Part shown: piece by piece, positions 809 through 35,280 of the stretch
Layout: each line of letters opens with the position of its first letter
Numbering within the stretch: the first letter of the stretch is position 1
Assembly: GCF_020745735.1 (NCBI RefSeq)
Contig: NC_083409.1
Location: 10,638,978-10,702,977 of the forward strand
Direction of reading: 5' to 3'
Source of the DNA: Hemiscyllium ocellatum
Lineage: Eukaryota
Length of the DNA stretch: 64,000 nt
The notes under the pieces: generated by a model
Seen by the model: only the letters and a program-made list of their open reading frames with translations
Told to the model about the DNA's origin: nothing
Database searches by the model: none
Translations under genes and position numbers: made by a program

Positions 809-814
809 GAAAGA

Positions 815-1105
815 ATTCAGACCAAGAGACCACAGATTGAAAGCAATTGGGAAAAGTAACAAAAGTGAGATGGGGAACAACATTTTTAGCCAGTGAGTGG
901 TTAAGGTGTGGAATGCACTGCCTGAGAGTGTGGTGGAGGCAGCTTCAATTAAAACATTCTGAAGGGAATGAGAATGTTAGTTGAAAAGGAACAAAGTGCA
1001 GGGTGAGAGGGAGAAGGCAGGAGAATGACATTCAGTGAATTGCTCATTCAGAGGGGATGGGTGGAATGGCCTCCTTCTGCACTGTAACAATTCTGTGATT
1101 GTGTG
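815..1105 (+). mobile_element. CR1 LINE 3' relic, shared in inverted form with 35280-35575
   Basis: Contains gtggaatgcactgcctgagagtgtggtggaggcag (WNALPESVVEA motif) and a ctgtgatt-type tail. The reverse complement aligns with 35280-35575. Confidence 0.75.
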
Positions 1106-1440
1106 ATTGAGCAGAGTAAAAGCTGGGGGAGGTGGGAGCTCGGTGTCTCACTGTGCTGCTGCTGCTGCTGTTGAGGTCAGTGAAATCAGAGACTGGGACA
1201 GGGAGCCAGAGCTCACATCAAAATCTGCCCATGTCCGTCACACTGAGACTGGCAGGAGGCTAGTCACTGATTTCACTCCATGCTGCAGGAATGGGACCAC
1301 AGGCTGAAAATGGACAGAGCTCCTCCACACAGTGAGTAAAACTGACTGACTTCTGTCTTGCTGCTTAAGCGGGGCAATGGAACTAAAGAGATACAGCTGG
1401 ACACCCTGTTCGACACAGTGCTCCTCAATCAACCATTTCA
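1085..1440 (-). promoter_or_regulatory. Conserved J-C intron block of cluster A (candidate intronic enhancer)
   Basis: About 96% identical by eye to 34910-35280 (rc). RUNX ACCACA at 1296-1301 and E-box CAGCTG at 1394-1399 are both kept in the other copy. Confidence 0.4.
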
Positions 1441-1546
1441 TTCACTGCAGCTCCCCACTAACACCTTCAACAATTCAGCATTTGTGATTTAGAAAGTGTA
1501 TTTCAGTATTGACAGGGTTAATAACGGACAATTGGGGTTTACTTGC

Positions 1547-1581
1547 TCTGTCTGAGTTTAGTTCCTTAACCGAACGTGTAA
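1547..1581 (-). pseudogene. IGKJ: Ig kappa-type J segment, pseudogene (YTFG*GTKLRQ)
   Basis: The minus strand reads T TAC ACG TTC GGT TAA GGA ACT AAA CTC AGA CAG A|GCAAGT. The FGxG motif carries an in-frame TAA (1566-1568) and the donor is GC instead of GT. Confidence 0.93.
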
Positions 1582-1620
1582 CACAGTGAGAGCTCCCAGT
1601 GCAGAGGCTGTACAAAAACC
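1582..1620 (+). other. 23-bp-spacer RSS of J-A (perfect consensus)
   Basis: CACAGTG 1582-1588, 23-nt spacer, ACAAAAACC 1612-1620. Confidence 0.97.
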
Positions 1621-2064
1621 TCTGCTCTCTGCTTCCCCCTGTCACTCTCAACCTCTCCCTGTCTCTCTCTGTCTCTGTCTATTCTTGGTCAATCTCATTC
1701 ACTCCCTACCCCTCTCTGTCTCTTCCTCATTCATGTGTCTTTCTCTCTCTGTCTCCCTGGGTTGTCTCCAGCTACTCTCAGGGGTTTATGAAATTTAGTT
1801 TTCATTGTTAAATCTTGCAGCTGTTCTTCACATGCGGTCATGGAGTGTAAGAGGGAAACTTGAGGCCTTCAGTGAGCGGTGGACACCACAGGGACTGGAG
1901 TGTGTCATGGACAGCGACAACCCCAGCATGGGGTAATTTGTTCAATTTACTTTATATATAACTGTGGACGTGTCAGTGCAGGAGGTGGGACTGTCTGTCC
2001 ATTATTATACATTTCATATAACTGTTGGATGTGTCAGTACAGGAGCTGGTATTGTGTGTGTTGA

Positions 2065-2092
2065 GGTTTTTGTATGGCTCTGTATCACTGTA
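2065..2092 (-). other. 12-bp-spacer RSS of V-A with non-canonical heptamer TACAGTG
   Basis: The + strand reads GGTTTTTGT 2065-2073, 12 nt, CACTGTA 2086-2092. The first base of the CAC is changed. Confidence 0.93.
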
Positions 2093-2388
2093 AAGGCTGC
2101 TACTATACTGCTGACAGTAATAGTCAGCAACATCCTCATTCTGAACGTTGCTGATTGTCAGGGTGAAACTGGTCCCTGATCCACTGCCGGTGAATCGATC
2201 GGAGACTCCTGTGAATCGAGTTGTTGCAGCATAGATCAGGAGAGAGGGTTTCTGACCTTCTCGCTGCTGGTACCAAGCAAGGTAGCTGCTAATGCTTTGA
2301 CTGGCCTTACAGGTGATGGTTGCGGTCTGGCCCAGTCCCACTGACAGCACCGGGGGAGACTGGGTCATGGTGATGTCCCCACTGATAC
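2093..2388 (-). CDS. IGKV: Ig kappa-type V exon, cluster A (open frame, defective RSS)
   Basis: Translates as (G)[98 protein letters not shown]. Both Cys, the W and the YYC motif are intact. Acceptor AG at 2390-2389. Confidence 0.95.
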
Positions 2389-2574
2389 CTGAGGGGTCAG
2401 AGAGAAACACAGTGAAGTCAGAACTGTCACAGAAAGAGCCTGTCAAATGAGAGATTGTTGGAGACACTGAGCATTCCTCTGGTTTCAGCATTTTCCCTTC
2501 AATCACAAGTCAGTGGAATTGGAGTGAAATGGAGAGCAGCGAAAGATTCAAGGTGGAAGGAGAGAGATTTGTAC

Positions 2575-2623
2575 CTGCGACACAGAATGCCAGGGGCCAG
2601 ATCAGCTGGATGTGTGAAATCAT
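2575..2623 (-). CDS. IGKV: Leader exon of V-A (MISHIQLIWPLAFCVA-G)
   Basis: ATG at 2623-2621, 49-nt phase-1 exon, GT donor at 2574-2573, 186-bp intron to the V exon. Confidence 0.93.
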
Positions 2624-2683
2624 GGTGTGTGCTCCTGTCCCTGTGCCTGGTTCCTGATAAACTCTCCCTTCACTGGGCTCTGC

Positions 2684-2780
2684 TTTATAAAGCTGCAGCC
2701 TGTGAGAGTCTGACTGGGTGTTCCTCAGTATGTAAATGGCATCAGGCAGAGAGAGCCACGTCAGCCCCTCACACTTCCTC
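2684..2780 (-). promoter_or_regulatory. V-A promoter: TATA box, variant octamer ATTTACAT, CRE-like TGACGT, Ets/PU.1 GAGGAAGTG
   Basis: On the + strand: TTTATA 2684-2689, ATGTAAAT 2730-2737, ACGTCA 2758-2763, CACTTCCTC 2772-2780. Confidence 0.75.
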
Positions 2781-2799
2781 TTCTCTCTCTCTCCCTCTC

Positions 2800-3720
2800 T
2801 CAGAGAATCATTGATATGGACAGCACTGAATGAGGCCATTTGGCCCATTGTGTCTGTGCTGTTAAACAAAGATCTGATTATCCTCCAGCTCTTGGCCCAT
2901 TACCCTGGAGGTTACAGCAACACAAGGGAATATCTAAACACTGCTCCAATGTCACGAGAGTTTGTGACTCAACCAGCCTTTCAGGCAGTGAATTCCAGAC
3001 TCCCACCACCTTCTGGGTGAGAACATTTCTTCTCAACTCTCTTCTCACTCTCTAACTCTCCAACTCGCCTGGCCATGGACTCACTCGAATTCAGAAGGAT
3101 GAGAGGGAATCTGATTGAAATGTATAAAATTCTAACAGGGCTGGGCAGGGAGGAGGTTTCCCCTGGTTGGGAAGTCTGGAATCAGGGGACCCAGTCTCAG
3201 GGGGATACAGGGTAGACCATTTTCGACTGAGATGAGGAAACATTTCTTCACTCAAAGGGTAGGACAACTGTGGAACCCAAGGAACTGAATAAATTCAAGA
3301 AAAAGAGAGCGATAATTGTTTTGCATTTTAGCAGCATGAAGAGAATGGGGAGAAAGCAGGAATATGGTTTTGAGATGGAGGATCAGCCATGATCATACTG
3401 AATGACAGAGGAGACTCAAAGGGCCAAAAGGCCTACTCCAGTTCCGAGTTTCTATGTGTCCATGTCTGTGTTACCTGGGACACAGGTTATTGAGTCCTTT
3501 ACTGATATATAAAGTGCCTTCTTACCCACGGTATCACTGCCCCAAATAATCTTATCCCCCTCTATCATGTCCCCTCTCAGCCTTCACTGCTCCAAGGAAA
3601 CAATCCCAACCTTTCCAAGATTTCCCCACAGCTGACCCTCCATCCCAGGCAGCATCTTGGTAAATCTCTGCACCCTCTCAAGTACAATCACATCCTTCCC
3701 AGAATGTGGTGACCAGAACC
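2800..3720. mobile_element. Nested CR1 3' fragments upstream of V-A, largely shared (inverted) with 32550-33540
   Basis: CR1 tail motifs (FFTQRVV/LWNSLP-type DNA). 2800-3480 aligns with the rc of 32740-33540. Confidence 0.65.
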
Positions 3721-3727
3721 TATCCAC

Positions 3728-4135
3728 CTCTCTCTCTCTCTCTGTCTCACATCTGCCACTTCTTTCTCTCTATCCCTCTCTCTCCTACTATTAATCTCTT
3801 TCATGTTCTCGCTGTCTCTCACTCTGTCTCATAGCCACTCTCCCCAATTCACTTATGCTTTCTCACTCCATCTCATAATCTTTATTTTTCCATCTCTCAC
3901 TGTCTCCATAACTCCTTCCCTCTCTCGGTTCAATTTAGATCCTCTGTTATCTCTCCTCTCCATACCTCCCTCTGTCTCTCTCCCTCTCTCTCTGTATTCC
4001 CAAATCTACAATCGTACTCCCTCCCTCTCTGTCATTCTGTTTTTAATCATACTCATGTCTCTCACTTTCTCTCTCTCTCTGGCACACACACACACACACA
4101 CTCACCCGTTGTCTCTGACTCACTTCTCTCTCTTT
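3728..4135 (+). repeat. (TC)n/(CA)n low-complexity tract; counterpart (GA)n/(TG)n at 31795-32520
   Basis: Runs of tctc and caca are directly visible. Confidence 0.9.
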
Positions 4136-4627
4136 CTCACAGTGTCCCAGGTTGTGGCAGTTGAATTCAGGATGAATCTCCCTCTCTCTGCCCCACTCAT
4201 GGATGGTAGCCCTTGACCCCAGAAGCATGTTTTCTCCTGGAGTAAGGCCCCATTTTCCGCATTGACCTGGATTTGGCCTCTCTCAGAAAGATGGCTAGAT
4301 TCTTGTCAAATGAAGGGCAGTTCTGTGCTGTTGGCCTGTTCTCACTGGGGACTGGTTTGGACACAAAGCTCATTCCATGAAGGCCCAGCAGAGAGAGGAG
4401 ATCCTCAGGCCATCAGTGTGAGCTGGAGGGACAGCACAAGATCTGACCCCCTGATCCAGCATGTCCATTCACAACATTTTCCAATCCCTTCCCCTCTCCT
4501 ACCCCTCTCCTTCCCTTTCCATGATCAGTCTCTGAGTCAGGGTGTTTTACTGGGATACGGGTTGAACCATTATACAGTTACAACAGAAAGGAACTGAACC
4601 CCACACTCACCTTGGTGTCCATGATGC

Positions 4628-4868
4628 ACTGGACTCTCCTACAGAGTCCAGTAAACATGACCTCCTTCCTGCAGGAGCCTCCACTAGAGACCAGTAAACA
4701 TTGGTCTCCTTCTGACTGGACTCTCCAAAGGAGACCAGTAAACATGTACCTCTTTCGGACTGGATCGTCTAGTAAAGACCAGTAAACATGGACCTCCTTC
4801 CTGCTGGAACCTCCAAGACAGACCAGTAAATATGGGCCTCCTAATCACTGGAACTTCCAATGGAGATG
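4628..4868 (+). repeat. ~44-bp tandem repeat (about 5.5 units); resumes at 6105-6250
   Basis: The core gaccagtaaacatggacctccttcc.actggaacctcc recurs every ~44 nt, for example ctggactctccaaaggagaccagtaaacatgtacctctttcgga. Confidence 0.85.
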
Positions 4869-4869
4869 A

Positions 4870-6095
4870 GTAGATGGTTGAGTTTTTGAAGAAGGAAGCA
4901 GGAAGATAGGTAAAGATAGAGTAGTACACTCTGTCTACATGGAGTTAATACAAGGTTCCCTATGGTAGACTGCTCAGTAAGATTATATCACATAGGATCC
5001 AGGGACAGCTCACCAATTGGATATGAAATTGGCCTGATGATAGGAGGCTGAGGCTGGTGAGAGAGGGTTGTTCTTCAGACTGGAGGCCAGTGACCAACTG
5101 TCTGTCGCAAGAATCGATCATGGATCCACTGTTGTTCATCATTTATGTGAACAATTTGGATGAGAAAATAGCAGGAATGGTCAGTAAGTTTGTGGCTGAT
5201 GTTAAAATTGTTGGCATAGTGGACAGGGAAGAAGGTTATCCAAGAGTGCAATGTCATCTTCATCAACTGGGCCAGTGGGTCAACAAATCCAGATGGAAAT
5301 TTTGATAAATGGAAGGAGTTGCATTTTGGGAAGACAAATCAGGGCAGAAATTACACAATTAATGGTAGAGCCATGGGGAGTGTTGTTGAACAGAGAGTCT
5401 GAGGGGTACAGGTACATAGTTCCTTGGAAGTGGTGTCACAGGTAGACAGGATGGTGAAGAAGGGACTTGGCACGCCATCTTCACTGGTCAAAGCAGGGAG
5501 TACAGGAGCTGGGACATCATGTTACAGCTGTACAAGGCATTGGGAAGGCCACATTTGGACACAGTACATTTCTGCTTACCCTGCTATAGGAAGGAAGTTA
5601 TGACAGTGGTTTGAATAAAAGAAAGATTAACAGGGATGTTATCAAGATTGGAGGATTTGAATTACAAGATGAGGATGAATAGGCCAAGATGTTTTTCCAG
5701 GGAATGCAGGAGATTGAGGGGTGACCTTATAGAGGTTGTGGAATTAGGAGGGTCATAGATAAGGTGAATAGTCAAAGTCTTTTCCCCAGGGTAGGAGAGT
5801 CCAGTACTAGAAGGAGTAGGTTTAAGTTGAGAGGGGAAAGAATTAGTAGGAAACTGAGGGGCAACATTTTCACACAGAGGTTAGTGTGTATGTGTAATGA
5901 GCTGACAGAAGCATTCGTAGAGGTGAGTATAATTACTACATTTCAAGGACATTTTTACAGGAACATGGATAGGAAAGATTAGAGAGAATTGGGCCAAACA
6001 CATGCAAATGGGACTAGTTCAGTTTTGGATACTTGGTCGGCATGGATGAGTTGAGCTGAACGGCCTGATCCCATGCTGTAAACCTCTATGACTCT
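4870..6095 (+). mobile_element. 5'-truncated CR1 LINE (RT C-terminal half and 3' tail)
   Basis: ORF 5057-5305 contains WRPVTN...PLLFIIYVNNLDE...SKFVADVKI (CR1 RT motifs). The tail ctctatgactct lies at about 6085-6095. Confidence 0.85.
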
Positions 6096-6104
6096 TTGGT
6101 GATA

Positions 6105-6250
6105 TATACATGGGACACTTTCCCATAGAACCAGTAAACATGGACCTCTTTCCACTGGAACCTCCAATAGACACCAATAAACAGGGACCTCCTTCCCATT
6201 GGATGCTCCAGAAGAGACTAGTAAACATGGTCCTCCTTCCCTCAGGACTG
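6105..6250 (+). repeat. Second half of the 44-bp tandem repeat (about 3 units)
   Basis: accagtaaacatggacctctttccactggaacctccaatagacacc... has the same core as 4628-4868. Confidence 0.8.
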
Positions 6251-7599
6251 GCCAGCACCTGAGCTACAACTCCGACATCCTCTCCATCATGCAGGTCTCT
6301 TATTTCAATCTCAACAACATTGTCTCTGCGTTACCTCGGCCCCTTGACCACAGAAACCCTAATTCCTGCTCGTCCTGCCCCCTAAATCTATGATTCCAAT
6401 GTCCTGTCCCAGCTTCCTAAAGCCATATTCCATAAACTCCAACTTGTCTGATATGGAGTGGGCCCTTCCCTGTCTTATCCATCTGTCATTCCAGAATGAC
6501 CCCTGACCTCACTGCTAGCCAATTGCCTCCATGGCCTCCCCCGTCCCTCCATCTGTGTCCTGCTGCAGACTCACATTCCCTCCCTCCCCCTTTCAACTTC
6601 TGTCTCTGGTCTCCTGCCCATTGCTACTTGCTCCAACCCACCATTGACAGCAGAGCATTCAGACCCCTACAGCATGCTCTCTGACCTCCTGCCCTTGATC
6701 CCTCCCCCTCTCAATGGTTGTGCTATTGAGTATACTGTTCAATCCCATCACTTTGGTTCACTGTTCCCTTGCCATTGATTTGCTGAATTCTTCCTCATCA
6801 GTAAATCTAGTCTGGTCTGTTCCTTGAGTTGGTTCAAGAGAGTTTCCCTTGAGAAAACACTCTTCTGTAAACTGGGTTGTCTGTTTCTCCCAGTCTTTGT
6901 GTAAAGGTGAGTCTAAGTGTGTGTAAGCTCTAAAACAGCACAGACAGAGGTCACTGGGCTGATTGTGACTGTTAGTCAAATGAGTCCAATGAGTCCCATT
7001 TCCCCAGCCCTTCCTGGATAACCCTGCAATTATTTCCTTTTCAGCTATTTCTCCAAATGCCCTTTTGAAAGTTGCTGTTGAATCCACTTCCACTCACCTT
7101 GCAGACAGTCATTATGAACTCGCTGGATAAAAAATGTTCCTATCTTCTCTCTTGTGCTTTCGAATCTTTCTGAAATGTGTGCCCTCTGGTTACTGACCCT
7201 CCTGCCTGGAGAAACAATTTGTCCTGTATTTACTGCATCCAAAGTCTCTAATTGTGAATCCCTCATTGAGTGAGACCTATTTCCAGCACAGGGGGAGAAC
7301 ATTCAGCCTGACAGGGAAATGCTGTCATTTCATGGAGCAATCCAGTCAGCCCCACCCCCTCCCCTACTCGACCCCCAGAGCCTTGCAGGTTTATTTCCAT
7401 CAAGAGCCCATCCAATCTGCCATTGCAATCACTGAGTGTCTTCACCTGTCTCACCTGAATGGGCACTAATTTCCAAGACTTTGCCAATTTCTGCTAAAAT
7501 CAAAGTTCTTTCTGACATTCCATATCTCTTGCCCAACAGAATGTAAGATAATCTCAAAGGGAAGACAGGATTTTGTCTCCACACGGACTGTGCGGCGGT

Positions 7600-8060
7600 C
7601 ACTCTTACTGATACTGTCATGGACAGATACACCAACAGCAGGCAGGTTGGTGAGGGTGATAGTGAGTATGTTTTTCCCTCTTGTTGATTCCCTCACCACC
7701 TGCCCCAGGTCCAGTCTAGCATCTGAATCAGGTGGAACTTGACCAGCTTGCTCAGTAGTGATGCTTCTGAGCAGCTCTTGATGGTGGGCTTTGAAGTCCC
7801 TTACTCAGGGTATATCCTGCATCATTCCCTCCCTCAGTGCTCCCACCAAGTGTTGTTCAACATGGAGGAGGACTGACTGCTCAGTTGAGGTTGGAGCGGA
7901 GGGCGGTGCTATGTGGTAATCAGCAGGAGGTTTCCTTCCCCATGTTTGACCTGCTGTCATGAGGCTTCATGGGTTCCATAGTTAATGGTGAGGACTCCCA
8001 GGGCAACTCCCTTCTGACTGTACACACCACTGTGTTGCCTCCCCTGCTTGGTCTATCCTG
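7600..8060 (-). mobile_element. LINE APE-endonuclease fragment
   Basis: The minus strand reads GDFKAHHQELLRSITTEQAG (GDFN motif region). The same family occurs at 29650-30950. Confidence 0.6.
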
Positions 8061-8232
8061 CCAGTTATAAACTCAATGAGGGAACAATTCTGTGCAGGTT
8101 TCACAGCTTGGAGACAGAGCAGCTGCTGGATTCTGTTTCTGATCTCCGAGTGCAGGCGTGTGTGTTTGTGAGAGAGTGACTGACACCTTTTCCAAAACTG
8201 TGCTGTTTCTGCAAAAATAAATCCTAGAACCA

Positions 8233-8470
8233 GCCTCCTGTGCTGTCAGATTCCAGGGAGTGAAGATGGTTCACAGTTTTCTCCCGTCTCAGTAACAAAC
8301 ACCCAGCTGCTCCGAGCTCCTTCTTTCACTTCCTCTTTTTTGTGAAGTTTCAACCTTGCGATCTGACAGTCTTTGCAGTTATTTTTTACACTGGGGCTTT
8401 CTGCTGTGGTCAGAATCTCTAATAATAAGTGTCAGATCAGTGACAATCACAGCAGCTAAGAGCAGTCAGG
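8233..8470 (-). promoter_or_regulatory. Candidate B-cell enhancer upstream of V-A (PU.1/IRF composite, E-box, RUNX)
   Basis: TTTCACTTCC 8324-8333 (rc of aaaaaGAGGAAGTGAAA), CAGCTG 8304-8309, TGTGGT 8405-8410. All are conserved at 28310-28558. Confidence 0.55.
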
Positions 8471-8935
8471 ACTGAGGAGCCAAGCTCATTGTGAAACATA
8501 TTGGGAAGATCAAAGCCATCCTCTTCAGATCCTGGTATAAACTCCATCCCTCTCCCTGAGCACTATCTGCTGCTCAACCAGACTCTTTACAAACTGGGTC
8601 TCATGTTTGAGAATCATCTAAGCCCCATATCTTTCATATCACAAAGATCAGCCACTGAAAATCTCAGCCATGTTTATGGGGCTCCAAACATGACCATTCC
8701 AATGGCTGATGCACATCACAGCCACTGCCCTTCGTATCCTTCAGCTCATCCAAAATTCTGCAGCCCGTATCCAAACTTGCACCAAGTCCCGTTCCCACAA
8801 CCCCCTGAACCCCGTGCCTATATTGGCTCCTGGTCAAGCAACACCTCGATTTTCAAATTCTCATCCTTGTTCTCAAATCCCTCTCTGCCCTCCACTCTCC
8901 CTATCTCTGTAACTTCCTCCAAGCTGCCTCACTCC
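8470..8935 (+). mobile_element. L2-clade LINE RT C-terminal relic, shared (inverted) with 27860-28310
   Basis: Contains IGKIKAILF and LQLIQNSAARIQT (the L2 LQLIQNAAAR motif). Confidence 0.75.
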
Positions 8936-9139
8936 GTGTAGTCAGCAATCTTGGATAATTGGCTCTCTATTCCTTCATCCAAGTCATTGAGAAATATTGT
9001 GAAATACTGAGGCCCCTGCACAAATCCCTGGGGACACCACTATTCACATCTTGTTCATTAGAGAGCACGCACATTATCCCTCTTCTCTGTCTCCTACCTC
9101 CAAACTAATTCCTCACCAAAGACAAATACTTTTCTGTCA

Positions 9140-11335
9140 CTGTCTTGATGATAGGAAGCAGAGGTAATATTGGAAGGATGCTTGTCAGACTGGAGGCCTG
9201 TGTTGAGTGGAGTGCCTCAGGGCTCAGTGCTGGCCCCATTACTGTTTGTTATCAATATTAATGGTTTGGATGAGAACCTGTAAGGCATGATTAGTAAGTT
9301 TGATGTGCAGGTCAGGTGAATTGGACATGTTAAATTGGCCATAGTCTTAGGTACATTAGTCAGAGGGAAATGTCTCTAAATGGGTTACTCTTCAGAGGGT
9401 CAGTGTGGATTGGTTGGGCCGAAGACCTGTTTCCACACTGGAGGGAATCTAATCTCTAATCCTGTACAGGATGTCAGTGAGGTCGCACTTGGAATATTGT
9501 ATTCAGTTTGGTCACCTTGTTATAGGAAGGATATTACTAAACCAGAAAGAGCACAGAAGAAATTGGCAAGGATGTTGCCTGGACTCAACAATCTGAGTTA
9601 TAGGGGGAAGTTAGCCAAGTTAGGACTTTTTTCTGAGAGCGTAGGAGACTGGTGGGGGAACATTTAGAAGTGTATAAGATCATGAGAGACATGGAGAGGG
9701 TTGGGGAAACGAGGATGAGAGGGCATCAGTTTAGTGTTAGAGAGGAATGAATAAAAGGGAACCTGAGGGGCAACATTTTTACACAGAGGGTGGCACGCAT
9801 GTGGAATGAGATGCCAGCTGAAGTGATTGAGGTGGATACATTAACAATATTTAAAAGACATTTGGACAAATACATAGATAGGAAAACATTTGAAGGATAT
9901 GGGCCAAGTGCAGGGAAATGGGGTTAGTGTGGATGGACATTTTGGTCAGCACGGTCCAGTTTGGGCCAAAGGGCCTGTCTCTGTGCTGTAGGACTCGATG
10001 GCTCTAAGACTCTATAATTCCATATGTTTCCATGTTTATGAACAGTCTCTCAAACATAGAAACAAAGGAACTAGGAGCAAGAGGAGGCCATTCAGCCCTT
10101 CAAGTTGGCTCTGCCATTCAATATGACCATGGCTAATCATCCAACTTAGTCCCCTGCTCCCATTTTTTCTCCATAAAATTTAACCCCTTTAGTTCTAAGA
10201 ATACACTTATCCTCTCTTGAAAATATTGAATGTTTTGGGCTCAACTGCTTTCTGTGACAGACTATCCCACTAGCTTCCCAGTCTCTGGCAAAAGAAATGT
10301 CTCCTCAGCTCAGTCTGAAATAACCTTTCCCTTTTCTTTAAACCATAATTCGTAGTTCTGGATTCCCCAATCATCAGGAACATCCTCCCTGTGTTGTTCT
10401 AGTCTTGTCCTGTTCGGATTTTCAAGGTTACAATATGATTCCTTTCAATCTTCTAAGTGCCAATGAATATAATCCTAACTGATCCAGTTTCTCATCAGAT
10501 CTAAGTGCTGTCCTCCCAGGAACCAGTCTGGTAAACCTTCACTGCTCTCCCTCCACAGCCAAAACATCCTTCCTCAATTAAGGAGCCTGAAACTACCCAC
10601 GACAGAATCATGAAATCACACAGTACAGAGGAGGCCCTTCAGCCCATTAACTGTGTACCAGCCAAACTACACTAAACCTACACCAGTCCCACTTTCCAAC
10701 ATGAGGCCCACAGCTTGAATGTTATGACATTTCAACTGCTCACCCAAGTACATTTTAAACTTTGTGAGGTTTCCCACCTCAACTCCCCTCTCAGGCTGTG
10801 CATTCCAGATGCACACCAACCTCTGGATGAAAAACATTTTCCTTAAAACATCTTGAAGCCTCCTAGCTTTCACATTGAATGTGAGTCAACTTGTTATTGA
10901 CCCTCCCAAAAAGGAGAACAGCTGCTTTCTCTCCTCCCTGCCAATTCCCCTCATAACCTTATACACCTCGATCAGGTCCCCCCTCCACCTTCTCTGCTCT
11001 ATAGAAAACAACCCGAGCTGATCCAATTTCTCTTCATCACTGAGAGGTTCCATCCCACACAACATCCTGATGATTCCCCTCTGCACCCCATCCAGTGCAA
11101 TCACCTCCTTCCTACAGTGTGGTGACCTGAACTGCACACAGTACTCCAGCTGTGGCCTAACCAATGTTCTGCTTAACTGCACCATCTCCTCCTGCTTTTA
11201 TAACCAACACCTGAAATGACAAAGGCAAGTGTCCCTTATGCCTTCATAACTGTTCCGTTAACCTGTCTTGCCATATTCAGGGATCAGTGGAGAAGCACCC
11301 CAAGATCACTCTGTTCCTTTGAGCTTCCTCAGTTC
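9140..11335. mobile_element. Cluster of CR1 3' fragments with a partial HE1-type SINE (about 9300-9470)
   Basis: ORFs 9380, 10667 and 10886 carry RPQLEYCVQF / RRWRGDLIEVYK motifs. The SINE segment is gatgtgcaggtcaggtgaattgg. Confidence 0.75.
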
Positions 11336-11339
11336 AAAG

Positions 11340-14300
11340 AACAAAGAGCAACGAAAATTACAGCACAAGAACTGGCCCTTCGGCCCTCCTAGCCTGCACT
11401 GGTCCATATCCTCCATCTAAACCTGTCATCAATTTTCCAAGGTTCTGTCTCCCTTTGCTCCCTGCCCATCCATGTATCTATCTAGATATATCTTAAATGA
11501 TGCTATTGTGCCTGCCTCTACCACCTCCACTGGCAACGTGTTCCAGGACCAATCACTCTCTGTGTGAAGAACTTTCCATACATATCTCCCTTAAATGTTT
11601 CCACTCTCACCTTGAACTCATGACCCCCGAGTAATTGAGTCCCTCATTCTGGGAAAAAGCTTCTTGCTATCCACCCTTTCTACACCTCTCATGATTTTGT
11701 AGACCCCAATCTGGTCCCCCCTCAACATTTGATTTTCTAATGAGAATAATCCTAATCTACTAAGCCTCTCTCCATAGCTAGTGCCCTCCATACCAGGCAA
11801 TCCTGGTGAACCTCCTCTACACCCTCTCCAAAGCATCCACATCTTTCTGGTAATGGGGCAACCAGAACTGTACACAGTATTCCAAATGTGGCCAAGCCAA
11901 AGGCTGATATAATTCTAATATGACCTTCCAACTCTTGTACTGAATACCACGTCTGGTGAAGGAAGATGTGCCATATGCCTTCTTGACCACTCTGTCGACC
12001 TGTGTTGTCACCTCCAGGGTACAATGGACCTGAACACCCAGGTCGCTCTGGGCATCAATTTTCCCAGGGTGTTCCATTCACTGTACAGTTTACTCCAGAT
12101 TTGGATCTTCCAAAATTCATCAGACTGCATTTGCCTGGCTTGAACTCCATCCATCCATTTCTCTGCCCAACTCTCCAATCTGTCTACATTCTCTGACAGT
12201 CCCCTTCACTATCTGCTACTCCACCAATATTAGTGTCATATGCAAACTTGCTAATCAGATCACCTATAGCTTCCTCCAGATCATTTATGTCTTTCCAAAA
12301 CAAGAGCGGTACCAGCACGGATTGCTGTTCTCCATTTTGAGAAAGTACTCCCACCACTACTGTCTGTCTTCTGTTGCCCAACCTGTTCTCTACCCATCTA
12401 GTGAGTACACTCTGGACCCCATGCGAATTAAATTTCTTTATCAGGCTACCATGGGGAACTTTATCAAACACCTTACTGAAGTCCATGTGTATGACATCCA
12501 CAGCCCATCCCTCCTCAATCAACTTCATCAGTTCTTCAATAAAATCTATAAAGTTGGTAAGACATGACATTCCCTGCACAACTTCATACTGCCTATTACT
12601 GATAAGTCAATTTTCTTCCAAAAGTAAATAGATCTTATCTCACAGTATGTTCTCCAGCAGCTTCCCTACCACTACATCAGGCTCACTGGTTGATAGTTAC
12701 CTGGATTATCCTGGCTACCCTTCTTAAACATTAACAATTCTCCAGTCCTCTGGGACCCTCATCCATGTTCAGGGTTGCTACAAAGATATCGATTAAGGCC
12801 CCAACTATTTCCTCTCTTGCTTCCCTCAGTAAGCTGGGATCGATCCCATCCCGACCTGGGGACTTGTGCACCTTGATGCCTTTTAAAATACCCAACACTT
12901 CCTCCCTCCTTAAATCGACTTGACCTCGAGTAATCAAACACCCATCCCCAACTTCAACATCTGTCATTTCCCTCTCCTTGGTGAATACCGACGTAAAGCA
13001 CTCATTAAGAATCTCATCCATTTTCTGACTCCACACATATCTTTCCTCCTTTGTCCTTGAGTGGGCCAACCCTTTCTCGAGTCATCCTCTTGCTCCTTAT
13101 GTATGAATAAAAGGATTTGGGATTTTCCTTAATGATATTTTGTGACCCCTTTAGCCCTTTTAATTCCTCACTTCAGATTGGTCCTACTTTCACGATATTC
13201 TTCCAAAGCTTTGTCTGTTTTCAGCCACCTAGACCTTATGTATGCATCCTTTTTCCTCTTAGCTAGTCTCACAATTTCATCTGACATCCAGCGTTCCCTA
13301 ATCATGCCATTTCAATCCCTTATTTTCACAGGGACATGTCTGTCCTGACTCTAGTCAACCTCTCTTTAAAAGCCTCCCACATATCAAATGTGGATTTCCC
13401 TTTAAACAGCTGCTCCCAATCCACATTCCCCAGCTCCTACCAAATTTTGGGATAGTTGGCCTTCCTCCACTTTAGCCCTCTTCCTTTAGGACCACTCTCA
13501 TCTTTGTCCATGAGCATTCTAAAACGTATGGAATTGTGATCACTCTTCCAAAGTAATCCCCGACTGAAATTTCAACCACCTGGCCGGGCTCATTCCCCAA
13601 CACCAGCCCAGTCTGGCCCCTTCCTAAGTTAGACTATTTCCACATTACTCTGTGAAATCCTCCTGGATGCTCCTTACAAATTCTGCTCCATTTTAACTTC
13701 TAACATGAAGTGAATCCCAGTCAATGTTGGGAAAATTAAAATCTTCCATCACCACCACCTTGTTACTCCTACATCTTTCCATAATCTGTTTACATATTTG
13801 TACCTCTACCTCACGTTCACTGTTAGGAGGCTTGTAGGATAGCACCAACATTGTTACTGCACCCTTCCTGTTTCTGAGCTCTGCCCATATTGCCCCACTG
13901 CTCGAGTCCTCCATAGTACCCTCCTTCACCACACCTGTGATATCCACTCTGACCAGTAATGCAACTCCTCCATCCCTTTTACCTCCCTCTCGAACCCATC
14001 TGATACATCTGTATCCTGAGATATTTAGTTAACAATCTTGCCATTCCCTCAACCACGTCTCAGTAATAGCAATAACATCATACTCCCAGATACTAGTCCA
14101 AGCCCTAAATTCATCTGCCTTACCTACTACACTTCTCACATTAAAACAAATGCATCTCAGACCATCTGTCCCTTTGCGTTCATCATCTGCTCCCTACCTA
14201 TTCTTAACCTTAGTCACGCTGACTTCAATATCTAGTTCCTGACAGGCTTTAGTTACTCCCTCCTTATTGCCCACTAACCTCCTCATTTGGTTCCCATCCC

Positions 14301-14800
14301 TCTGCTACACTATTTTGAACCCTCCCCAAGAGCGTGATCAAACACATCCCTCAGGACACTGGTTCCAGTCCTGCCCAGGTGTAGACCACTCGATTTGTAA
14401 TTGTCCTACCTCCCCAGGAACCAGTCCCAATGTCCCAAAAATCTGAACCCCTCCCTCCTGCACCATCTCTCAAGCCACACATTCATCCTGCCTATATTTT
14501 CATTTCGACTCTGACTAGCACATGGCACTGGGAGCAATCCTGAGATTACTACCTCTGAGATCCTACATTTTAATATGGTTCCTCACTCCATAAATTCTGC
14601 TTGTAGGACCCCATCCCATTTATTACCGATATCATCAGTCCCTTCATGCACCATCACAGCTAGCTGTTCACCCACCCCTTCAGAATGTCCTGCAGCCGAT
14701 CTGAGACATCCCTGAGCTGTACAACTGGGAGGCAACATGCTATTCGTGAGTCTTGTTTTTGACCACAGAACCGCCGATCTATTCCCCTTACAAAGTCCAA
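11340..14800 (-). mobile_element. Long decayed CR1 LINE (ORF1 esterase end, endonuclease, RT, 3' tail)
   Basis: Motifs MVHEGTDDIG (SGNH-like), AIWAELRNRKG...EDFNFPNIDW (EN), CLTNFIDF...MDFSKVFDKVPH (RT) and WPHLEYCVQFW, with many stops and frameshifts. Confidence 0.9.
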
Positions 14801-15584
14801 ACAAACCATATCCATGGGCCCCCCCTTATCAAATCCACTCACTACATCCTCAAACAATTCCAGTCGATTTTTTAAGCATGATTTCCCTTTCGACAATTCA
14901 TGCCGACTCTGTCCAGTTCTGCCACTGTTTTCAAAGTGCTAAGCTATAAAATATTTTATAATGAACTTAAGCATTTTTGCCACTGCTGACTTCTGGCTAA
15001 TTGGTCTAAAATTTCTTATTTTCCCTCTCTCTCTCTCTCTTTCAATAGGCGTGTTAAATTAACTCCCTCCATTTTGTAGGACCTATTCCACAGTCGACAA
15101 ACAGATAACCATCAATGTTCCTCATATTTTACAACCACTTCCTGAAGCACTCCTGAAAATAGATTATTTGGCCCTGCTGATATAAGACATTCTAATTTTC
15201 CCAGAACCATTTTTCTCCAACAACTGACTTCCTTCAGCTCCTTCCTCTGATAAAACTCCAAGTTCACCAACATGTCTGAGATTTATTTGAGAATTCATTT
15301 GTGCAGAAAGATCCAGAATATGTTTATCTGTCATCTCTTTGTTCCAACTATAACATTATAACACTTGTGTGGAACTACCTTGAATGTCATCTGGACGTCC
15401 ATATAAAAAACACATTACCTTATCTCACACATTAGTGACCTCGTTAAAACATGTAACCAGGTTAGTTAAAGATGTCTGACCCTTTTTAATCCATGCTGAC
15501 TTACTCTGATCTGTTCACATTTGTCGGACATTCTGTCTCTAAACAGATTTAATTACTTCCCAACAATAGACATTCAACGGAGAT

Positions 15585-16124
15585 AAAAACAATGTCTGCA
15601 GATGCAGCAAACCAGATTCTGGATTAATGATGCTGGAAGAGCACAGCAGTTCAGGCGGCATCCGAGGAGCAGCGAAATCGACGTTTCGGGCTAAAGCCCT
15701 TCATCAGGAATAAAGGCAGTGAGCCTGAAGTGTGGAGAGATAAGCTAGAGGAGGGTGGGAGTGGGGAGAAAGTAGCATAGAGTACAAGCAAATGTGGCTG
15801 TGGGAGCGAGTTTGTTTCATGACATGGTTGAAGAGCTTCTCTCTACAAGAATCTCAGGGAGTCCCTCTCCCACTGCAACTCCCAGGTCATTTCCTCTGCC
15901 CTGAAGCTCTTCAAACATTTCAAGAAACAAACTCGCTCCCACAGCCACATTTGCTTGCACTCTATGCTACTTTCTCCCCACCCCCACCCTCCTCTAGCTT
16001 ATCTCTCCACGCTTCAGGCTCACTGCCTTTATTCCTGATGAAGGGCTTATGCCCGAAACATCGATTTCGCTGCTCCTCGGATGCTGGCTGAATGGCTGTG
16101 CTCTTCCAGCACCACTCATCCAGA
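15585..16124. mobile_element. Penelope-derived fold-back insert with two hammerhead-like cores and a 13-bp TSD
   Basis: Inverted arms at about 15616-15840 and 15903-16126. Cores at 15684-15707 (-) and 16035-16058 (+). TSD attcaacggagat 15572-15584 / attcaatggagat 16125-16137. Confidence 0.8.
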
Positions 16125-16204
16125 ATTCAATGGAGATGTTCATTGTGAGTGAGGTTAGTAAACAGCTAGTACTGACACAAGGGGCTGAACAGCCTCCTTC
16201 TAGA

Positions 16205-19200
16205 GTCATAGAGTCATAGAGATGCACAGCATGGAAACAGACCCTAAGGTCCAACTTGTCCATGCCAACCAGACATCCCAACCCAATCTAGTCCCACCTG
16301 CCAACACCTGGCCCAGATCCCTCCAAACCCTTCCTATTGATATACCCATTCAGATGCCTTTTAAATGTTGTAATTGTACCAGCCTCTACCACTTCCTCTG
16401 GCAGCCCCATTCTGCACTTGCACCACTCTGTGCGTGAAAAAGTTGCTTCTCAAGTCTCTTTTATATCTTTCCCCTCTTACTCTAAACCCATGCCCTCTAT
16501 TACTGGACTCCACCAGCTCAGGGAAAAGACTTGGTCTCTTTGCCCAATCCATGTCCCTCATGATTTTGTAAACCTCTGTAAGGTCACCCCTCAGCAGGGA
16601 CCTCTGTAAGGTCACACCTCACTCAAGGGAAAACATCCCTAGTCTATTTAACTTCTCCGTATACCTTAAATCCTCCAACCCTAGTAATATCCTTGTAAAT
16701 CTTTTCTGAACCCTTTCTAGTTTCACAACATCTTTCTGATAGGAAGGAGATCAGAATTGAATACAATACTCCAAAAGTGGTTTAGGTGACCTCCCAACAC
16801 CCATACTCAATTCTGTAATCAATAAAGTAAAGCATACCAAATGTCTTCTTCATTATCCTACCTACCTACGACTCTACATTCAAAGAGCTATGAACCTGCA
16901 CTCCAAGGTCTCTTTGTTCAGCAACACTCCCGAGAACCTGACCATTAAGTGTATAAGTCCTGCTAAGATTTGCTTTCCTAACTGCAGCACCTTGCATTTA
17001 TCTGAATTAAACTCCACCTGCCATTCCTCAGCCCATTGGCCCATCGGATCAAGATCCTGGTGTAATGTGAGGTAACTTTCTTCGCTGTCCACTACACCTC
17101 CAATTTTGGTGTCATTTGCAAACTTACTAACTCTACCTCCTATGTTCACATCCAAATCATTTATGTAAATGACAACAAGTAGTTGCCCAGCACCAATCCT
17201 TATGACACTCCACTGGTCAGTGACGTCCCGTCTGAAAAACAACCCTCCACCATCACCCACTGTCTTCTACCTTTGAGCCAGTTCTGTATCCAAATGGCTA
17301 GTTCTAACTGTATTCCATGAGATCTAACCTTGCTTACCAATCTTCCATGGGGAACCTTGTTGAATGTCTTACTGAAGTCCGTACAGATCCAGTGTAACGT
17401 TCTGCCCTCATCAATTCTTTCTGTTACTTCTTCAAAAAACTCAATCAAGTTTGTGAGACATGATTTCCCATACACAGAACCATGCTGACTATCCCTAATC
17501 AGTCTTTGCCTTTCCAAATTTATGGACAATCTGTCCCTCAGGATTCCTTCCAATAACTTCCTCACAATTGACGTCTGGCTGACTGGTCTACAGTTCCCTG
17601 GCTTTTCCTTACCACCTTTCTTAAGTAGTGGCACCAATTAGTGAACCTCCAGTCTTCTGGCACATCATTTGTGACTATTGAGGATACAAATATCACAGTA
17701 AGAGGCCCAGCAATCACTTCCCTAGCTTCCGACAGAGTCCTAGGGTATACCTAATTAGGTCTTGGGGATTTATCCACATTTATGCATTTCAAAGACATCT
17801 GGCACCTCCTCATCTGTAATATGAACATTTTTCAAGATATCACCATCTATTTCCCTGCATTCTATATCTTCAATATCCTTCTCCACAGTTAGTGAAGCAA
17901 AATACTCATTTGGTATCTGCCCCATCTCCTGCGGCTCCACACAAAGGTCGCGTTGCTGATCTTTGAGGTGCCCTATTCTCTCCTTAGTTACCCTCTTGTC
18001 CTTAATGTATTCATAAAACCCCTCTGTATTCTCCTTAACCCTATTTGCCAAAGCTATCTCATGTTGTTGCCCTCCTGATTTCCATCTTAAGTATACTCCT
18101 ACTGCCTTTGTATCCATCTAAGGATTCACTCAATCTATCCTGTTTATATCTGACATATGCTTCATCCTTTTTCTCAACCAAACCCTCAACTTCTCTCATC
18201 ATCCAATATTCCCTACACCTACCAGCCTTTCCTTTCACCGTAACTAGAATATACTATCTCTGGGCTCAATTTATCTCATTTCTGAAGGCTTCCTATTTTC
18301 CAGCTGTCCCATGACCTGCGAGCAACTGCCCCCAATCAGCTTTTCAGAGTTCTTGCCTAATACTGGCAAAATTAGCCTTCCTCCAATTTAGAACTCCAAC
18401 TTCTGGATCTGGTCTATCCTTTTCCTTCACTATTTTAAAATGAATAGAATTATGGTCGCTGACCAAAAGTGCTCCTCCACTGACACCTCAGTCACCTGCC
18501 CTGCCTTATTTCCAAGGTTGAGCTTTGCACCTTCTCTCGTCGGTACATCCACATTCTGAATCAGAAAATTGTATTGTACGCACTTAACAAATTCCTCTAC
18601 ATCTAAACCCTTCACACTATAGCAGTCACAGTCTATGTTTGGAAAGTTAAAATCCCCTCCTATAACCACCCCATTATTCTTACTGATAACTGAAATCTCC
18701 TTACAAATTTGTTTGTCAATTTCCCGCTGACTACTGGAGGGGAGCTATATTATAATCCCAACAAGGTGATCATCCCCTTCTTTTTTCTCAGTTCCATCCG
18801 AATAACTTCCCTGGATGTATTTCTGGGAATATCCTCCCTAAGTACAGCTGTAATGCTATCCCTTATCAAAAATGCCACTCTCCCTCCTCTTGTGCCTCCC
18901 TTTCTGTCCTTCCTGTAGCATTTGTATCCTAGAACATTAAACGGTCAGTCCTGTCCATCCCTGAGCCATATTTCTGTAATTGCTATGATATCCCAGTCCC
19001 ATGTTCCTAACCACGCCCCATGTTCATCTTCCTTCCCTGTAGGCCTCTTGCAGTGAAATAAATGCAGTTTAATTTGTCAGTCTTACCTTGTTCTCTGCTT
19101 TGTCCCCGCCTGCCCTGACTGTTTGACTTGCCTTTGTTCTCAACTTTACCAATCTGAGGATGAAATCTTTCCTCACTATCTCCCTGGGACCCACCCGCCC

Positions 19201-19920
19201 ACCTTACTAGTTTAAATCCTCCTGAGCAGCTCTAGCAAATCTCCCTGCCAGTATATTAGTTCCCTTCCAATTTAGGTGCAATCTGTCCTTCTTGTACAGG
19301 TTACTTCTACCTCAAAACAGCTTCCAAAGATCCAAAAATGTGAATCCTTCTCCCATACACCAGCTCCTCAGCCATGCATTCATCTGCTGTATCCTCCTGT
19401 TGCTGCCCTCACTAGCTCATAGCACCAGGAGTAATTCAGATATTACTACTCTTGAGGACCTCCTTTTTAAATTCCTGCCTAGCTCTCTGCAATCTCCCTT
19501 CAGAATCTCAACCTTTTCCCTTACTATGTCATTGGTTGCAAAGTGTACAATGACCTCCTGCTGGTCTCTCTACACTTAAGAACATTCTGCACCCTCCCTG
19601 AGACATCTTTGATCCTGGCACCAGGGAAGCAACACACCATTCTGATTTTTTACTGCTGGCCACTGAAATGTCTGTCTGTACCTCGGGCTAGAGAGTCCCC
19701 TAACACAGTCGATTGTTTGGAACCCGACGTACCTCCCATTACATTAGAGCCAGTGTCAATACCAGAAACTTGGCTGCTCATGCTAAGTACCCCTGAGTTT
19801 CCATCACCCCCTACATTTTCCAAAACAGCATACTTGTTTGAAATGGGAATAACCACAGAAGACTCCTGGACTACTTGCCTACCTCTCTTGCCTTTCCTGG
19901 AGTTATGGTAAGAGCCCATG
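16205..19920 (-). mobile_element. Near full-length decayed CR1 LINE
   Basis: ORF1 linker SVVIPISNKYAVLE, EN GGDFNFPNID, RT VPLLKKGGKEKPGNCRPVS...CLTNLIEFF...TDFSKTFNKVPH and YINDLD...SKFANDTK, plus the 3' tail gagtcatagagtcatagag at about 16203-16220. Confidence 0.9.
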
Positions 19921-20134
19921 GGATCCAAGGCATTTTGGCAAATTGGATCCAAATATGAGGCAAAGAGTGATGGGAGAGGTTTGTCTTTGTGATTGGAAGC
20001 CTGTGACCAGTGGTGTAAGACAGGGACTGGGGCTGGGACCCTTGCTGTTTGTAATGTACATTAACAAATTGACTGTGATTGTAAAATTAGAAAGTTTTCA
20101 GAGGCCACATAAATTGGTTGTGTTATTGATATTG

Positions 20135-27620: not shown

Positions 27621-28309
27621 ATTGATTGGAATTTGAGAAATGCATTTACCTTGGGTCAGGAATGGGTCTGTCTAGGAGACAGAGAGGAAGGATAATGTGC
27701 GTGTGTTCCAATGAGACAGATGTGAGTAGTGTTATTCCCAGGGATCTGTGCTGGGACCTCAGCTTTTCACGATATTTCTCAATGATTTGGATGAAGAAAC
27801 AGAGAGCCATATATCCAAGATTATTGATCACACTGAGTGAGGCAGCTTGGAGGAGGTCACAGAGATAGGGAGGGTGGAAGAACAGGGAGCAGATTGAGAA
27901 CAAGGATGAGAATTTAAAAATCGAGGTGTTGCTGGACCAGGAGCTTATGTCAGTCAGTGAGGATTGTGGTGGTCATGGTGGGGTGGGGAGGTTTGGGCAG
28001 GGGTATGGGGTGGACTTGGTGTGAGTTTGAAAACAGACAGCAGAGTTTGGGATGAGCTGATGTTTACGGAAGTCAGTGGCTGTGATGTGGGCCTGGATAT
28101 CATTGGAATGGTCACAAAAACATGGTTGAGATTTTCAGTGGCTGATAATTGTGATGTGGAGGATTTGGGCCTCAAATCAGCCCCAAAGATGAGGCCAAAG
28201 TTGTAAAGAGTCTGGTTGAGCAGCAGACAGTGCTCAGGGAGAGGGATGGAGCTTGTACCAGGAGCTGAAGAGGATGGCTTTGATCTTCCCAATGTGTTTC
28301 CCAGTGAGC

Positions 28310-28558
28310 CTGGCTCCTCAGTCCTGACTGCTCTTAGCTGCTGTGATTGTCACTGATTGGACACTTATTATTAGAGTTTCTGACCACAGCAGAAAGCCCC
28401 AGTGTAAAAAATAAATGCAAAGACTGTCAGAGCACAAGGTTGAAACTTCATCAAGAGAGGAAGTGAAAGAAAGAGCTCGGAGCAGCTGGGTGTTTGTTAC
28501 TGAGATGGGAGAAAACTGTAAACTGTCTGCACTCCCTGGAATCTGACAGCACAGGAGG
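28310..28558 (+). promoter_or_regulatory. Candidate B-cell enhancer upstream of V-B
   Basis: ACCACA 28383-28388, GGAAGTGAAA 28459-28468, CAGCTG 28483-28488. Inverted homologue of 8233-8470. Confidence 0.55.
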
Positions 28559-29123: not shown

Positions 29124-29321
29124 GGGAAACCAAAAGAACTGCAGATGCTGTAAATCTGAGACAAAAATAGAAAGTGCTGGAAAAGCTCAGCAGGTCTGGC
29201 AGCATCTGTGAAGAGAAATCAGAGTTAATATTTCATGCTCAACCCGAAATGTTAATTCTGATTTCTCTCCAAGATGCTGCCAGACCTGCTAAGCTTTTCC
29301 TGCAATTTCTATTTTTGTCCA
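29124..29321. mobile_element. Penelope-derived fold-back insert
   Basis: Arms at about 29161-29234 and 29247-29318. TSD tgggtttgga at 29114-29123 and 29322-29331. Confidence 0.7.
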
Positions 29322-33731: not shown

Positions 33732-33780
33732 ATGATTTCACACATCCAGCTGATCTGGCCCCTGGCATTCTGTGTCGCAG
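33732..33780 (+). CDS. IGKV: Leader exon of V-B (MISHIQLIWPLAFCVA-G)
   Basis: ATG at 33732, 49 nt, GT donor at 33781, 186-bp intron ending in AG at 33965-33966. Confidence 0.95.
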
Positions 33781-33966
33781 GTACAAATCTCTCTCCTTCC
33801 ACCTTGAATCTTTCGCTGCTCTCCATTTCACTCCAATTCCACTGACTTGTGATTGAAGGGAAAATGCTGAAACCAGAGGAATGCTCAGTGTCTCCAACAA
33901 TCTCTCATTTGACAGGCTCTTTCTGTGACAGTTCTGACTTCACTGTGTTTCTCTCTGACCCCTCAG

Positions 33967-34265
33967 GTATCAGTGGGGACATCACCATGACCCAGTCTCC
34001 CCCGGTGCTGTCAGTGGGACTGGGCCAGACCGCAACCATCACCTGTAAGGCCAGTCAAAGCATTAGCAGCTACCTTGCTTGGTACCAGCAGCGAGAAGGT
34101 CAGAAACCCTCTCTCCTGATCTATGATGCAACAACTCGATTCACAGGAGTCTCCGATCGATTCACCGGCAGTGGATCAGGGACCAGTTTCACCCTGACAA
34201 TCAGCAACGTTCAGAATGAGGATGTCGCTGACTATTACTGTCAGCAGCATAGCAGCTACCCTCAA
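33967..34265 (+). CDS. IGKV: Ig kappa-type (NS4-like) V exon, cluster B, apparently functional
   Basis: Translates as [12 protein letters not shown]...[19 protein letters not shown]...[12 protein letters not shown]...[12 protein letters not shown]. The short CDR1 and the V-12/J-23 RSS layout are kappa-type. Confidence 0.96.
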
Positions 34266-34729: not shown

Positions 34730-34768
34730 GGTTTTTGTACAGCCTCTGCACTGGGAGCTCTCACTGTG
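34730..34768 (-). other. 23-RSS of J-B (perfect)
   Basis: GGTTTTTGT 34730-34738, 23 nt, CACTGTG 34762-34768. Confidence 0.97.
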
Positions 34769-34803
34769 GCTTACGTTCGGTAAAGGAACCAAGCTCAGAC
34801 TGA
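34769..34803 (+). CDS. IGKJ: Ig kappa-type J segment, cluster B (LTFGKGTKLRL)
   Basis: G CTT ACG TTC GGT AAA GGA ACC AAG CTC AGA CTG A|GTAAGT. The FGxG motif and donor are intact. Confidence 0.96.
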
Positions 34804-34909
34804 GTAAGTAAACCTCAATCCTCTGTTATTAACCCTTTCAATACTGAAACACACTTTCTAAAATACAGTTGCTGATTTGTTGAAGGTGTTAGTGGGAAGC
34901 TGCAGTGAA

Positions 34910-35177: not shown

Positions 35178-35215
<38 letters not shown>

Positions 35216-35280
35216 CAGTGAGACACCGAGCTCCCACCTCCCCCAGCTTTAACTCTGCTCAATCACACAATCACAGAATT
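34910..35280 (+). promoter_or_regulatory. Conserved J-C intron block of cluster B, containing (CAG)12
   Basis: CAGCTG 34951-34956, TGTGGT 35050-35055, (CAG)12 35178-35213, CACAGTG 35214-35220. Homologous to 1085-1440. Confidence 0.4.

Follow-up and report, generated by a model that had tools for sequence, protein, structure and literature searches.

Each of the two kappa-like light-chain clusters in the window, by which we mean the whole 64-kb stretch of shark DNA that was analyzed, is preceded by a copy of a compact block that combines an Ets/IRF composite (EICE-type) site with motifs like the others of known bird and mammal light-chain enhancers. Tentatively, we favor the reading that this block is a functional, cluster-autonomous enhancer, possibly derived from an L2 LINE. 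The features of its sequence that argue for such a candidate are exact EICE and MEF2 sites within 100 bp of each other, accompanied by a CASSTG E-box, a kB-like site matching at 9 of 10 positions, a RUNX site and, in copy 2, a CCAAT box, as well as the better preservation of the block relative to the adjoining L2 tail and the persistence of its core across organisms. Against special constraint stand the ordinary identity of the block among the duplicated arms, a conversion-like mosaic of differences, its retention in a cluster that looks dead, and the post hoc choice of the motifs. The per-cluster 5' enhancer proposed in the initial annotation is accordingly supported in part and neither refuted nor shown: motif set and preservation over the L2 tail speak for it, the points on special constraint against it.

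The two clusters are arranged head to head and form the arms of a large inverted duplication (809-9096 versus 35572-27673), to which additional collinear pieces belong (15412-16201 versus 27407-27168); a third V gene was not found in the 64-kb window. The components of the clusters, the two copies of the upstream block, and the LINE relic adjoining each of them are as follows.

1542..1588, minus strand: J segment of cluster 1, with an in-frame stop (FG*GT, codon TAA)
2081..2623, minus strand: leader, intron and V-kappa-like exon of cluster 1, leader ATG at 2623(-)
8234..8600, minus strand, the strand of its V gene: copy 1 of the conserved block, at a distance of 5.6 kb 5' of V1
8588..9096, plus strand: decayed L2-type LINE, ORF2 C-terminal region and 3' end, copy 1, with frameshifts, stops and an internal deletion
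27673..28205, minus strand: L2 relic, copy 2
28192..28558, plus strand: copy 2 of the conserved block, at a distance of 5.2 kb 5' of V2
33732..34256, plus strand: leader, intron and V exon of cluster 2, leader ATG at 33732(+)
34762..34808, plus strand: J segment of cluster 2, with heptamer and open reading FGKGTKLRLSK
46195..46545, plus strand: constant exon of cluster 2, within an open frame, ending in SECV

Cluster 2 looks intact, and the recombination signal sequence (RSS) of its V gene is perfect (CACAGTG-12-ACAAAAACC). Cluster 1 looks dead; with a damaged V RSS heptamer (TACAGTG instead of CACAGTG; 2040-2085, minus strand) in addition to the stop in its J segment, it is probably a pseudo-cluster. 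Downstream of the cluster 2 constant exon, GC-rich DNA holds an inverted repeat pair (50428-51488 versus 59101-60184) of 74-79% identity, with an assembly gap (56919-57118) between its arms. Strong negative GC skew (-0.3 to -0.38) extends over ~10 kb in each of two regions, 10000-20000 and 36000-46000, the latter being the J-C intron of cluster 2, and direct repeats link 16198-17649 with 36082-37770.

The duplicated upstream element had been annotated as a ~240-bp stretch at 8233-8470 and 28310-28558. Both copies are confirmed, as mutual reverse complements, and so is their claimed position 5.2-5.8 kb 5' of the ATG: measured from the leader ATGs at 2623(-) and 33732(+), the distances are 5611-5847 bp for copy 1 and 5174-5422 bp for copy 2. 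As to extent, the start of the element is indeed sharp (8234/28558), but its end is not where it had been placed, since homology between the copies reaches 9096/27673, a length of 863 bp. Within this homology the well-kept unit spans ~367 bp (8234-8600), of which the earlier 8233-8470 is the left two thirds in copy 1; the unit is 92-93% identical between the copies and the remaining homology 75-89%. By segment, identity is 93.6% in 8234-8470 and 90.8% in 8471-8600, drops to 75% past ~8600, and amounts to 76.6% over 8601-8800 and 81.8% over 8801-9096.

On its other side the block borders on DNA that the clusters do not share. The surroundings had been described as differing between the clusters, which holds; they are, however, not diverged homologous DNA, as 4510-8233 and 28559-31417 are unalignable and rich in transposon pieces. 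This gap between the block and the proximal upstream region (4510/31418) measures 3.7 kb in cluster 1 but 2.9 kb in cluster 2 and is crowded with tandem repeats and LINE pieces. In copy 2 the block is adjoined by a shark repeat of very high abundance, recognizable by AGGAGCA..GAGGAGGCCATTCAGCCC (28542-28700, plus strand) and is found again at 10060-10300 (plus strand). Copy 1 has only the first 15-20 bases of this repeat (GACAGCACAGGAGG), so the left edge of the block may be a transposon junction that was followed by a deletion in copy 1.

The initial annotation had named the adjacent L2 relic as the yardstick for conservation. Between the copies the block is clearly the better kept of the two contiguous sequences (92.6% versus ~80%), and the enhancer idea is not refuted on this point. 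The same difference counts against the main rival explanation, which sees in the block no more than a neutral passenger. On that view, an ancestral kappa cluster had old non-coding DNA 5' of it, possibly the 5' portion of the L2 relic, which was copied along in the duplications; gene conversion across hundreds of clusters would have kept the copies similar, and the motifs would be fortuitous. We regard this explanation as a serious possibility, and much of the comparison between the arms is in its favor. Scored in steps of 100 bp, their alignable non-coding DNA shows 74-99% identity, with 99-100% in the promoter-leader-V tract, 94-98% in 900-1299, 92-99% in 2900-3299 and 97% in 4300-4399. At 92-93%, the block falls within the range of this other duplicated non-coding DNA and is no identity outlier in the window. 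The 99-100% identity of the V tract indicates that homogenization is active in these arms, and the probable pseudo-cluster retains the block with its EICE, E-box and MEF2 sites intact.

Two side observations concern the same arms. Although cluster 1 looks dead, its promoter-leader-V tract and the one of the intact-looking cluster 2 agree at 99-100%. A patch of the J-C intron 250-650 bp downstream of J (900-1299 versus 35100-35500), at 94-98%, is better kept than the upstream block, and could be either a second regulatory candidate or a conversion tract.

All three motifs claimed for the block, GAGGAAGTGAAA, CAGCTG and TGTGGT, are present in both copies, and the list can be extended.

8304..8309 in copy 1 and 28483-28488 in copy 2: E-box CAGCTG, of the E2A-preferred CASSTG class
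8324..8335 (minus strand) in copy 1 and 28457-28468 (plus strand) in copy 2: Ets/IRF composite site GAGGAAGTGAAA
8393..8410 (plus strand) in copy 1 and 28383-28400 in copy 2: kB-like and RUNX pair
8393-8402 (plus strand) in copy 1: kB-like site GGGGCTTTCT, 9 of 10 consensus positions
8405-8410 (plus strand) in copy 1 and 28383(-) in copy 2: RUNX core TGTGGT
8419..8428 (plus strand) in copy 1 and 28365-28374 in copy 2: perfect MEF2 consensus YTAWWWWTAR (CTAATAATAA)
28354..28360 (minus strand) in copy 2: CCAAT box CCAATCA

The EICE-type pattern GGAANNGAAA occurs at only six sites in 64 kb and its exact form GGAAGTGAAA at only two, both in the block copies. In both copies, 14 nt separate CAGCTG from the end of the EICE, and the kB-like site departs from the NF-kB consensus GGGRNWYYCC solely in missing its final C. 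The MEF2 consensus is likewise restricted to four sites in the whole window, two of them in the block copies. With only six EICE-like and four MEF2 sites available, the presence of both within 100 bp is uncommon, and the rarity in the window of a stretch this short with exact matches to both argues against a neutral passenger with fortuitous motifs. The wider set as well as the original triple was picked post hoc from the sequence, and the combination of EICE, CAGCTG and TGTGGT within 240 bp arises in 7% of shuffled 64-kb windows; the survival of all three motifs in both copies at 6.4% divergence has a probability of ~0.2. The remaining four GGAANNGAAA sites of the window are at 45863(-), 51941(+), 59198(+) and 157(+), the first of these ~330 bp 5' of the open frame containing the constant exon of cluster 2.

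The motif content of the block can be compared with that of enhancers of known function. E-box, NF-kB, MEF2 and PU.1-IRF4 sites are conserved in the Ig-lambda enhancers of chicken, mouse and human, where mutation has shown that they are needed for activity, and E-box, NF-kB and PU.1-IRF4 sites are conserved in the Ig-kappa 3' enhancer, IgkE3' (PMC3972084). Like the candidate described here, the Ig-lambda enhancers (cIgLambdaE, hIgLambdaE, mouse E-lambda 2-4 and 3-1) are compact modules of ~150-200 bp that contain a PU.1-IRF composite site, MEF2, an NF-kB-type site (in the block a kB-like one) and one or more E-boxes, with an E-box downstream of the composite (PMC3972084). That the full motif set of the block mirrors these tested enhancers is a further argument against chance assembly in neutral DNA (PMC3972084). 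The likeness is judged by motif content, and it has exceptions: the kB-like and MEF2 sites stand in reversed order in the block, the kB-like site is imperfect (9/10), and the RUNX and CCAAT sites are extra. The known Ig-lambda enhancers also lie 3' of C and serve one locus each, whereas the shark block lies 5' of V and is present once per mini-cluster. Its location 5.2-5.8 kb 5' of the leader ATG thus differs from the usual positions of a light-chain enhancer, 3' of C or in the J-C intron. The 10-mer GGAAGTGAAA is identical to what we take to be the core of the mouse lambda-B site. The Ig-kappa 3' enhancer core of mouse and human, with its PU.1/Pip site next to an E2A site, and the block both have an EICE followed at a short distance by an E-box, an arrangement at which IRF4 and E47 cooperate; that enhancer, in contrast, lies 3' of C-kappa rather than 5' of V, and no CRE was seen in the block.

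The ~240-bp stretch had also been said to resemble no recognizable repeat. No significant L2 match was obtained for 8234-8587; from ~8588 on, past that stretch, the homology is a decayed L2 LINE. Metagenome contigs provided 80 related L2-type loci, five of them with long ORFs extending from the RT domain to the C-terminal region, and a profile built from 67 L2-type ORF segments was aligned to the DNA allowing for frameshifts, with shuffles as the control. The profile aligns to copy 1 from 8498 to 8931 (85 bits). Its score is 74 bits over 8700-8960, which none of 300 shuffles reached, and 17 bits over 8588-8700, which 2 of 300 reached; over 8470-8587 it is not significant relative to shuffles, nor is it over 8234-8497. 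For the earlier 8233-8470, the real score was reached by 194 of 200 shuffles with copy 1 alone and by 15 of 200 with copy 2 alone. A profile search of the 107-codon frame that includes IGKIKAILF in copy 2 was not significant either (59 of 500 shuffles reached the score). Judged by sequence likeness, identity as an L2 relic is shown for 8588-9096 only, and the proposal that 8234-8587 is a demonstrable 5' part of the ORF2 relic was dropped, as its profile match is not significant.

Within 8588-9096 the relic carries the RNLG..D..LS, LQxIQNSAAR, HITP..LHWLPVxQRIDFKIL and PYL motifs in the order of the L2-clade ORF2 3' region; it differs from a complete ORF2 in being 5'-truncated, in its stops and frameshifts, in a deletion of ~20 codons, and in having no RT domain and no coding capacity. 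A 49-aa in-frame piece (8809-8955) matches P0001 and P0003, proteins with the LHWLPVxQRIDFK..PYL motif, in a protein search that returned only three matches, no full-length LINE among them. In a local tblastn search, the piece also matches L001, the Logan contig encoding P0003, with an E value of 1.8e-11. L001 is itself a relic: its positions 1-1900 are an internally deleted L2-type element in which the pre-RT region is joined straight to the W..LN..KTE region, without an RT domain, and it was rejected as unusable as a reference upstream of KTE. The L2 3' tail (8894-9095) recurs at 23711-23915 with 68% identity. Searches with other resources added little: Pfam returned nothing relevant for frame pieces from either copy (seven for copy 1, three for copy 2), the best ESM Atlas score for the 79-aa open frame was an uninformative 0.76, and Rfam found no RNA family anywhere in the window. 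Beyond the relic, 9130-10014 consists of nested CR1-like LINE pieces, comprising an RT fragment (9164-9274), a 3' region and a tail; with a summed contig depth of up to 790,000, these are the most abundant repeats in 7234-10233.

Whether the block itself once belonged to the L2 element bears on both the enhancer and the neutral reading. In copy 2, the frame reading IGKIKAILF is preceded by 79 open codons and is broken only by a TGA near a conserved L2 Trp position. This stop-free continuation of an L2-like frame is in favor of a neutral passenger of L2 origin, with the reservation that 4.9% of random 79-codon frames in the window are also open. Shark L2 proteins, which presumably read IGKTEAIVFGPRHKL...SIPLPGNSLRLNQTVRNLGVIFD, would put the start of the relic at or before 8497. 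LINE and SINE fragments have been recruited as tissue-specific enhancers in mammals. The block resembles such exapted elements in adjoining a 5'-truncated L2 ORF2 relic with which it is possibly continuous, the frame of copy 2 continuing the L2-like frame, and differs from them in that the significant L2 match stops short of its motif-bearing part.

A second alternative is that the block is a piece of a dispersed transposon, derived from L2 ORF2 or from another repeat, with many copies unrelated to kappa genes. To gauge copy number, contigs of four runs were compared with 7234-10233 at 80% likeness, and the single-copy depth was taken as ~7-17, the contig depth of individual diverged LINE copies. 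Over 8234-8633, summed depth is 1.2-3 thousand in run X1 (~190-330 copy equivalents at the deepest bins), 12-25 thousand in run X9 (>1,000 copy equivalents) and 5-15 thousand in run X17 (>1,000 copy equivalents at the deepest bins). These depths, the 10-35 distinct contigs that cover single variant positions of the block, the presence of its core even in very small runs of organism B, and its contiguity with the L2 relic are what a dispersed transposon would lead one to expect.

Depth was nonetheless rejected as proof of a transposon, as one block per cluster can yield such values. Shark antibody genes are organized in hundreds of small, independent clusters; if the kappa clusters are that numerous, one block in each would explain the contig depth, and the copy count is equally compatible with a single block for each kappa cluster and with a dispersed transposon. 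Against the latter, the number of copies estimated for organism A would be plausible as a number of clusters, and 8234-8587 has no significant protein-level match to the L2 profile, Pfam or the ESM Atlas. Within the 64-kb window the block is confined to its two upstream copies, while other LINE families recur there many times. Moreover, an active family should carry the L2 3' tail in all its copies, yet the depth of this tail does not exceed that of the block, an argument against a related L2 family of high abundance. We therefore consider a dispersed transposon piece improbable. The check for a high-copy repeat that the initial annotation had called for has a divided outcome: the block is multi-copy and occurs in several shark species (organism A at ~190-330 copy equivalents, B and C at more), and the enhancer idea is not refuted by this. 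A different low-copy sequence came to light in the same comparison: 7234-7467 is found only in the upstream region of cluster 1, and a contig of organism B matches it at 97% identity with a depth of 149 (~12 copies), which marks it as a low-copy, well-kept sequence and not a high-copy LINE.

The contigs also show how the two copies relate to the rest of the family. Copy 1 and copy 2 differ at 28 positions in 8234-8600. In 8434-8637, at least 15 letters of copy 1 depart from nearly all contigs, which match copy 2; none of the strongly supported departures listed for copy 1 falls in 8234-8433, so the 13-14 differences of this part most likely represent private changes of copy 2 or minority variants. 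Copy 1 consequently agrees with the family majority in its left half and departs from it on the right, whereas in copy 2 the pattern is inverted, with the switch near 8434. The CCAAT box falls at this boundary: it is gone from copy 1 through changes at 8434 and 8435, where nearly all contigs of other copies have C and A, like copy 2, and CCAATCA is thus in the majority. The left-right mosaic looks like the outcome of gene conversion rather than of site-specific constraint, and so lends support to a neutral passenger. Nor is there significant avoidance of the motif cores, as 2 of the 28 differences fall in the 51 motif bases, with the CCAAT box counted, versus 3.9 expected. Also on the side of neutrality, the L2 3' part is represented in organisms B and C by collapsed multi-copy contigs (depth 52-289, 82-93% alike to copy 1), which implies that the neighbor of the block is homogeneous among copies too.

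A broader comparison used sampled 31-mers of copy 1, counted by organism. For the core (8287-8433), the share found is 0.67 in organism A, 0.58 in B, 0.50 in D, 0.25 in E, 0.67 in F and G, and 0.58 in H, I and J; for the whole homology (8234-9096), it is 0.61 in A, 0.25 in B, 0.23 in C, 0.09 in D and 0.05 in E, a contrast that is partly due to private changes of copy 1 outside the core. Core words thus persist in D and E, the organisms that hold least of the whole stretch, which is more readily expected of a retained element than of a neutral passenger. Organisms A-J may, however, be close relatives in a slowly evolving lineage, in which case the shared 31-mers may be neutral. No dataset listed as containing the stretch is recorded as RNA.

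Returning to the enhancer reading, the block would be a fixed part of the repeated shark kappa-cluster unit, acting as that cluster's own upstream B-cell enhancer. In the mechanism we propose, a Spi/PU.1-family factor and IRF4/8 would jointly occupy GGAAGTGAAA, an E protein would bind CAGCTG 14 nt downstream, and the distal half, at 50-110 bp, would be occupied by MEF2, a Rel/NF-kB-like factor, RUNX and NF-Y. Once assembled, the complex would loop to the V promoter, 5.2-5.8 kb off, where it would open the cluster for V-J joining and drive transcription. Like the Ig enhancers of tetrapods, the block may in addition direct somatic hypermutation to its cluster, and it may have been recruited from the directly adjoining 5'-truncated L2 LINE relic.

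Shark Ig clusters have been thought to need their own promoter-enhancer complex, in an account that names no mapped enhancer (PMC2435157), and the literature searched yielded no mapped Ig enhancer in cartilaginous fish. On the motif and placement evidence, it is conceivable, and we put it forward with reserve, that the block is the first antibody-gene enhancer to be mapped in this group, one that sits upstream of each cluster, follows the E-box/MEF2/kB/PU.1-IRF grammar of the tetrapod Ig-lambda and Ig-kappa 3' enhancers, and was maybe recruited from L2.

The candidate addresses the question of how each shark cluster is switched on in a single B cell, and its compact, motif-defined form makes cluster activation testable by reporter or chromatin assay. 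Should the block prove inactive, it would caution that, where a gene family is large, concerted evolution can produce the semblance of a conserved regulatory element. Should it prove active, it would become a tool for studying cluster choice and hypermutation targeting, and the PU.1-IRF, E2A and MEF2 logic of light-chain enhancers would date to the base of the jawed vertebrates. If it is indeed the first such enhancer in cartilaginous fish, this enhancer logic, and perhaps hypermutation targeting with it, would predate the split between sharks and bony vertebrates.
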